In this document: positions 44,149-44,879 of the stretch, piece after piece
How positions within the stretch are numbered: the first letter of the stretch is position 1
How the letters are laid out: each line of letters starts with the position of its first letter
Assembly (NCBI GenBank): GCA_021613535.1
Contig: CP075495.1
Span: 4,774,001-4,838,000 of the forward strand
Reading direction: 5' to 3'
Source of the DNA: Adineta vaga
Lineage: Eukaryota > Animalia > Rotifera
DNA: 64,000 nt
Translations under genes and position numbers: made by a program
The notes under the pieces: model-generated
What the model saw: only the letters and a program-made list of their open reading frames with translations
Database searches by the model: none
What the model was told of the DNA's origin: nothing

Positions 44149-44879
44149 CTACATGGCATACTTTTGAGTCCACTGTCGCGCCGTCTAAATATTAAATAAA
44201 AAAGAATTTTCAAGTGATAGTCTTCATTTGTAACATACTGCGTTATATTTTTCTTTATCCGTTTTGTATGTACGAGCAATATCAGGCACTAATGGATCCT
44301 AAAATGAAAAGAATTATGATAGACGAAAGAGTTAGATTGATAAATTACGTCAGGATTTGGATCGCAAAGTAATGAACAAATTGAAAGTAACACTTTGGAA
44401 ATGGTCAATGCCGGTGACCATTGTGAACGAAGAATATCCAGACAAATAGCTCCATTTGAATTTATATTCGGATGAAAAATTTTTGTTGTAAATCTAAATC
44501 ATGGCTGATAAGTAATGTTGATATTTTTAACAAAGTCATTTTACGTGATTTTGGGTGGTTTAAATGGATAATCGGCCGGAAAATGTATTGAAAGAAAGAA
44601 TACACCACCTTGAAATGGACTATCACCCGGTCCCATTATCGTTGCCTGCCGTAAAATAAAAATAGAGACAAAATCAACATCGATGAATGAGAAAATTCTA
44701 GGAAACACTTATAATGAAACATGTCATCGTTAACTGGTCCAGCACTGCAATTGGCTGGTGGACTAAAAACAACAAATAAAAGAAGAAAATTCGATGTAAT
44801 TTTTGAAAGGAAAAGTACACTTAAGAACGTACTCTTTTTCAAGTTCGAGTAATTCTTTATTAATACGCTTCAATGCCAT
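44149..44879 (-). CDS. UBE2D: ubiquitin-conjugating enzyme E2 D (UBC4/5, effete-like), 6 exons
   Basis: Spliced product [147 protein letters not shown]. Not called in the ORF track. Confidence 0.96.
44651..44712 (-). other. non-canonical AT-AC intron (62 nt) in UBE2D
   Basis: CAT T|ataagtg...tattttac|GG CAG GCA restores the conserved H-W-Q-A-T. The nearest GT-AG alternative gives an immediate stop. Confidence 0.85.

Follow-up and report, generated by a model that had tools for sequence, protein, structure and literature searches.

In this study, we have identified an unusual intron in the UBE2D gene of the bdelloid rotifer Adineta vaga, which starts with AT and ends with AC and which is very probably a constitutively removed U2-type intron of the 'AT-AC II' class, with the assignment of the spliceosome drawing on its sequence motifs. 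Its excision at the AT...AC ends, at the junction 44650/44713, is confirmed by transcripts. The gene is part of a stretch of 64,000 nucleotides (termed the window, to which all positions refer unless a contig is named) that corresponds to C2:4774001-4838000 in the searched genome of 100.8 Mb in 6 contigs. A preliminary description of this stretch had proposed an AT-AC intron with a U2-type donor, and on this central point the RNA junction, the genomic DNA, the comparison of six copies and the missing U12 motifs are in agreement.

The intron resides in an intact gene of six exons on the minus strand (44879-44149), whose joined coding sequence of 444 nt encodes 147 amino acids followed by a terminal stop. 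Exon 1 (44833..44879, 47 nt) opens with the ATG at 44879-44877 and is connected in RNA contigs by the joint 44762/44833 to exon 2 (44713..44762, 50 nt), which ends with ...TTTCATT at 44713 and whose last base, a T, is the first of the Trp33 codon. Beyond the AT-AC intron, exon 3 (44545..44650, 106 nt), starting from 44650 with GGCAGGCAACG, supplies the GG of Trp33 and continues into QATIMGP. The HPN motif and the codon of Cys85 (44444-44442) are found on exon 4 (44349..44493, 145 nt), which is followed by exon 5 (44239..44298, 60 nt, as placed by the gene model) and the coding part of exon 6 (44149..44184, 36 nt, the last three of which, 44151-44149, form the TAG stop), and RNA contigs run past this stop into the 3' UTR to about position 43766 (X14 record 7 and X11 record 2). 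The remaining four introns of 50-70 nt are all of the GT-AG type. Their joints were observed in RNA and they comprise intron 1 (44763..44832, 70 nt, detected in the runs X11, X14 and X16), intron 3 (44494..44544, 51 nt), intron 4 (44299..44348, 50 nt) and intron 5 (44185..44238, 54 nt). Domain and structure searches, which were run exon by exon with exons 3 and 4, returned the Pfam family UQ_con for both (E = 3.8e-11 and 3.8e-20, respectively), and a comparison with the PDB identified residues 69-116 of UBE2D1/2/3 as best solved relatives of exon 4, in register with the gene model. The protein thus combines a UBC signature, the HPN motif and the catalytic Cys with a length of about 147 residues devoid of extensions, and it is closest to UBE2D1-3, as expected for a member of the UBE2D class.

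On the minus strand, intron 2 (44712..44651, 62 nt, phase 1) begins with ATAAGTGTTT and finishes with TATTTTAC, interrupting the codon of Trp33 after its first base. With the intron removed, the predicted protein contains DMFHWQATIMGP and displays the E2 hallmark ...FHWQATIMGP.... The preliminary description had stated that this conserved segment can only be obtained by the removal of 62 nt extending from ATAAGT to TTTTAC, and we find the coordinates to be exact and the 147-residue E2 to be restored upon excision. A shift of the intron borders by a single base would either alter the Trp or create a stop, and retention of the intron leads to a premature stop, which would cut off the protein after about 56 codons. 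Two alternative choices of splice sites were considered and rejected. The use of a nearby GT..AG pair results in the sequence K-Q-R-stop, which had been noted before and was reproduced in our gene model, and the use of a GT within exon 2 as alternative donor equally results in a stop, with neither of the two being used by any RNA contig.

Evidence for the excision was obtained from contigs of four public runs (X5, X11, X14 and X16), which were aligned to the region 42001-47900 of the window. The joint 44650/44713 skips 62 bases, with GT..AT as the ends on the plus strand and zero letters that would fit both sides, and it was found in X11, X14 and X16, which originate from three different studies. 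Whereas X16 is registered as a metatranscriptome and thus as RNA, X11 and X14 do not carry such a label, and we treat both as RNA in practice because their coverage is confined to exons and their introns are spliced. In X11 and X14, the joints on both flanks of exon 2 are contained within single contigs (side = 50). A second contig of X16 shows the identical exon junction with the codon CAC instead of CAT for His32, and the mRNA of a relative thus carries the same joint. The joint is absent in the DNA run X5, where a contig of 1.5 kb covering 43766-45005 deviates from the window at no positions other than 43849, 43920 and 44528. Since these mismatches are located away from the ends of the intron, both AT and AC are present in independent genomic reads, which match the window at the terminal positions 44712 and 44651. 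The 11 other introns that are visible within the same 5.9 kb are GT-AG without exception (11/11), consistent with what had been reported for the other introns traced in intact genes of the window.

These data bear on the concern that the unusual ends might result from an error of assembly or sequencing at the termini, from a pseudogene or from template switching during reverse transcription. AT-AC junctions are generally a classic sign of mis-annotation, and we found nothing that would favor such an explanation in the present case, whose probability we regard as negligible. The DNA run X5, along with five other loci, rules out an assembly error, since the independent reads contain identical termini and the AT...AC ends are common to six diverged loci, and the same observations bear out the previous assertion that sequencing errors at both terminal bases are unlikely. 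The intact open reading frame and its strong purifying selection speak against a pseudogene, and a template switch is difficult to reconcile with a joint that is devoid of microhomology and that recurs in three studies.

The unusual intron is not confined to the window. A second UBE2D copy located on contig C5 (L003) contains the same five intron positions, with an intron 2 of 51 nt extending from ATAAGTATCT to TTTTTTAC, and the homoeologue thus keeps an ATAAGT...YAC intron at the same site. Among 80 UBE2D loci retrieved in a scan of metagenomes with exon 4, an intron in the Trp codon is found in only three (L017, L018 and L031, with lengths of 69, 52 and 54 nt), all of which (3/3) are of the form ATAAGT...YAC. 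The other 77 either lack an intron in this codon or resemble cDNA, as most of them do, and they are therefore uninformative on the ancestral state. A word-based protein search with the same exon, which covers only proteins of 26-84 residues, led to the JGI contig L108 containing the same ATAAGT...YAC intron. Taken together, the window, L003, L017, L018, L031 and L108 define six phylogenetically non-independent loci with an AT-AC intron of 51-69 nt, in phase 1 and at one position. The four environmental contigs probably belong to related bdelloids, in light of their identical proteins and intron positions, their base composition and the order of tandem genes. The proteins encoded by the six genes differ by 0-1 residues, whereas their four-fold sites are 48-78% identical, and this relation between 0-1 amino acid changes and a divergence of up to about 50% at four-fold sites indicates strong purifying selection of the open reading frame. 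The introns themselves have diverged to an extent that their interiors are not alignable, with 53-75% identity in a global alignment, which is about the level of unrelated AT-rich sequence. Apart from the ATAAGT and the AC at the end, the invariant positions across the six copies are limited to scattered T/A columns of the T-rich tract. All other introns of the six genes are GT-AG (24/24).

The two copies in Adineta vaga are embedded in a larger region of similarity, where positions 26-63 kb of the window are collinear, in inverted orientation, with C5:12635500-12662000. This block of about 37 kb contains dozens of exon-level matches with 35-97% protein identity, whose collinearity identifies the C2 and C5 copies as parts of a duplicated block. 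We take this block to be a remnant of the ancient tetraploidy of bdelloid genomes. The window thus represents one member of an old pair of duplicates, a circumstance that helps to date features contained in it, and the presence of the AT-AC state in both copies of the block and in what appear to be several related species indicates that this state is old.

A more distant tandem paralogue of UBE2D (L004, L110/L111) is devoid of an intron at the Trp33 site. Two Logan contigs (L110/L111) turned out to represent this paralogue, intronless at the site. The paralogue is found intact beside the C5 copy (L004) and in L017, L018 and L037. A decayed copy of this tandem UBE2D-like paralogue is located in the window at 42010-42460 on the minus strand, where exon 1 and an exon encoding 'DLFNWQG.ILGP' can be recognized. 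The exon that follows is broken by stops and interruptions of the frame, and the one with the catalytic HPN...C is absent. A spliced joint at 42223/42293 of low depth in X14 suggests that the decayed copy is still transcribed. Elsewhere in the same region, a gene on the plus strand (about 45945-47707) contains a GT-AG intron of 380 nt (46646-47025), which is spliced in contigs of X14 and X16 and retained in record 5 of X11 (46618-47126, unbroken) at comparable depth, as a case of either alternative splicing or retention.

The sequence features of intron 2 were inspected with respect to the machinery that mediates its removal. Its 5' splice site ATAAGT (44707..44712) corresponds to the U2-type consensus GTAAGT with an A at position +1. 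The match at positions +2 to +6 is perfect and the motif is invariant in 6/6 loci, in accordance with the U2-type donor proposed previously. The window donor reads ATAAGTGT and those of its relatives ATAAGT[ACG]T. The sequence AAGT at positions +3 to +6 is present in 6/6 AT-AC introns compared to 3/24 of the GT-AG introns that these genes contain, an enrichment with a Fisher value of 1.4e-4 for lineages that are not independent. A similar pattern, where the rest of the splice site compensates for a non-canonical donor, was described by Sheth et al., 2006 (PMC1557818). According to our pairing, ATAAGT would form 5-7 contiguous base pairs with ATACTTACCTG, the canonical 5' end of U1 in this genome. 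At the 3' end (44651..44674), a candidate branch site TTGAT, whose putative branch-point A is located at 44674, is followed by a tract rich in T and by the AC at 44652-44651 that ends the intron. Such a tract is found ahead of the AC in all six copies, together with candidate branch sites of the form TTGAT, TTAAT or CTAAT, which are located 12-33 nt upstream of the 3' end.

AT-AC ends are also typical of the minor system, and we thus considered that intron 2 might be removed by the U12-dependent spliceosome despite degenerate signals. The genome would offer the required components, since genes for all four minor snRNAs, whose search had been suggested before, were found with scores above the Rfam gathering cut-offs (U12 78 bits, U6atac 83, U11 82 and U4atac 93). 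However, the rotifer snRNAs have retained the canonical elements of U11, U12 and U6atac for pairing with the donor ATATCCTT and the branch box TCCTTAAC, whereas neither this donor (in its ATATCC form) nor, within the last 40 nt, this branch box is present in any of the six copies (0/6 in both cases). When compared to ATATCCTT at positions +3 to +8, ATAAGT agrees only in the A at +3, and a sequence TTTCCTAG found close to the 5' end of the window intron is located 45 nt from its 3' end and is not conserved. Instead, it is the U2-type AAGT that constitutes the conserved element of intron 2. A genuine U12-type AT-AC intron in the MED23 gene of the same genome (L099), which served as positive control, shows the textbook motifs, as it begins with ATATCCTTTT and carries TTTTCCTTAAC 10 nt upstream of the AC. 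The earlier statement that U12 motifs are missing in intron 2 thus holds for all six copies, and we consider its removal by the minor spliceosome to be highly improbable.

The A at the first position might alternatively be accommodated by a U1 variant with a compensating base, which we rejected since all U1 genes scoring above the Rfam cut-off (6/6) keep a C opposite to intron position +1. Three of these six genes carry the 5' end ATACTTACCTG and the other three ATACTTACTTT. The latter are located at C2:2628065-2628229 (L105), C6:4233946-4234107 (L106) and C5:14662872-14663036 (L107), and their 5' end is altered at the bases that lie opposite to exon positions -1 and -3. They may be variants that fit the exons of this genome, whose ends are A/T-rich.

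The described features suggest how an intron with such ends could be processed by the U2-type machinery. U1 and U6 would recognize the donor through positions +2 to +6 (TAAGT), with a match that reaches position +8 in most copies, and the strength of this interaction would make up for both the A at +1 and the poor end of the exon (ATT). U2 would bind the branch site resembling yUnAy ahead of the T-rich tract. During the second step of catalysis, a pair between A(+1) and C(-1) would substitute for the usual non-Watson-Crick contact between G(+1) and G(-1). This proposal relates to experiments cited in PMC1557818 (Parker and Siliciano, 1993; Chanfreau et al., 1994; Scadden and Smith, 1995), according to which a mutation of the first base from G to A blocks splicing, which is rescued, with lower efficiency, by a mutation of the last base from G to C. 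An intron in this state would be trapped, as any single terminal change, to either GT-AC or AT-AG, would impair splicing. The term was used by Lin et al., 2010 (PMC2831892) for U2-type AT-AC introns, where a return to GT-AG would require two simultaneous changes and where several changes would be required to become U12-type. We think it most likely that intron 2 is held in place by such trapping in an essential and highly conserved E2 gene, where the AT-AC ends persist because either of the terminal changes alone would break its splicing, and this mechanism would explain their conservation without invoking a regulatory role.

Such a role had been proposed in the preliminary description, with the intron acting as a slow-splicing control of an essential E2. 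In this scenario, a U2-type intron that is slowly removed or often retained would throttle the output of UBE2D. It would be consistent with the truncation of the protein after about 56 codons upon retention, with the long maintenance of the odd ends and with the rescue of the first-base mutation that, as described in PMC1557818, remains below wild-type efficiency. However, our data do not support this control, since all RNA contigs carry the spliced form, although contigs cannot measure retention. Unspliced or alternatively spliced contigs over intron 2 are not listed among the assembled contigs, which drop rare forms, and the AT-AC joint shares contigs of high depth with the adjacent GT-AG joints. 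Similarly, X14 and X11 contain shares of 0.50 and 0.60, respectively, of the 31-letter words, which fit the exons and UTRs alone according to our arithmetic. As the two-step fitness valley implied by a trapped intron (PMC2831892) provides a simpler account of the conservation, we regard a regulatory device as improbable, and trapping remains our preferred explanation.

With respect to the origin of the intron, we are about evenly divided over whether it has evolved by conversion of a minor intron. This route would be plausible in bdelloids, a clade whose loss of minor introns is extreme, though not complete (PMC10639083), and it would agree with the location of intron 2 in phase 1 rather than phase 0. 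Moreover, ATAAGT and ATATCC differ at exactly the positions +4, +5 and +6, where changes were proposed by Lin et al., 2010 (PMC2831892) for the 'rare pathway' leading from U12-type to U2-type AT-AC introns. Conversely, the 77 other UBE2D loci do not contain an intron at the equivalent position, though most of them look like cDNA, and our literature search found no paper tying UBE2D to U12-type introns. The same search found no discussion of AT-AC introns in Adineta, and rotifers are not named in one supplement by Larue and Roy. A double change from a GT-AG intron has a lower but still considerable probability in our assessment, and we find it rather unlikely that the intron was gained with its AT-AC ends. 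In the copies of the C5 lineage (L003:1279-1291 and L031:367-378), the 5' end reads AT-AAGT-ATC[CT], which upon removal of AAGT would resemble the U12 donor ATATC[CT]. We considered this feature as a relic of a U12-type intron and rejected this view, and since the other copies, namely those of the C2 lineage and L017, do not contain it, the resemblance is probably due to chance.

The unusual ends may also have consequences for annotation. The named database protein that is nearest to exon 4 of UBE2D is a partial NCBI model of 77 residues (P0002) from the sister species Adineta ricciae, in which exon 4 is followed by out-of-frame sequence. We attribute the mangling of the A. ricciae model to the AT-AC intron, which would cause gene predictors to break UBE2D.

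Introns of the AT-AC II class have been known since 1997, with counts of 15 (human), 6 (mouse) and 3 (fly), whereas worm and Arabidopsis have none (PMC1557818). Examples named in the same work, with reference to Dietrich et al., 1997 and Wu and Krainer, 1997, include vertebrate SCN4A/SCN5A and TAF2. The UBE2D intron shares with these the AT and AC termini in conjunction with an otherwise U2-consensus donor containing a G at +5, the lack of both a donor and a branch box of the U12 type, the conservation of its odd ends across distant relatives and its extreme rarity. It differs by its residence in another gene and phylum (Rotifera) and by its length of 51-69 nt, compared to vertebrate introns that are typically much longer. 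U2 dependence, which was biochemically shown for SCN4A/5A, is deduced from sequence in the case of UBE2D, and the sodium-channel genes also carry a U12 intron, whereas none is known in the UBE2D gene. The U12-type intron of MED23 resembles the UBE2D intron in its AT-AC ends, in a location outside phase 0 and in being part of a genome that contains the minor machinery. However, with its ATATCCTTTT start and the TTTTCCTTAAC ahead of the AC, it is distinct from an intron that instead contains ATAAGT and a T-rich tract. A third parallel concerns yeast actin and mammalian introns with engineered double mutations, whose terminal bases form the same pair and in which A/C presumably also takes the place of the G/G contact. 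Whereas these are laboratory constructs of lower efficiency, the UBE2D intron is natural and fixed, and it was kept through block duplication and speciation. The UBE2D intron is thus a well-supported addition to the known AT-AC II class in a new gene and phylum and not a new mechanism.

Collectively, our results add to one of the rarest natural classes of introns, of which there are only few per animal genome and which constitutes the natural counterpart of the experiments on first-base and last-base suppression. The example in UBE2D is unusually clean, as it concerns a very short intron in an essential and near-invariant gene that is supported by RNA and that is older than the block duplication. 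Its AT-AC ends have survived this duplication and the subsequent speciation while the remainder of the intron has changed. On a more tentative level, we think it possible, although doubtful at this stage, that bdelloids contain a considerable number of U2-type AT-AC introns, which were made while most of their minor introns were dismantled, with the one in UBE2D as one of them. If true, the 'rare pathway' from U12-type to U2-type AT-AC introns (PMC2831892) would be common in bdelloids, the share of AT-AC II introns in these animals would by far exceed the 0.003-0.008% of human and fly and the intron in UBE2D would testify to an ancestral minor intron at Trp33 that has been lost. Our study thus suggests that a census of splice junctions in bdelloids would offer a cheap test of the conversion of minor into major introns.
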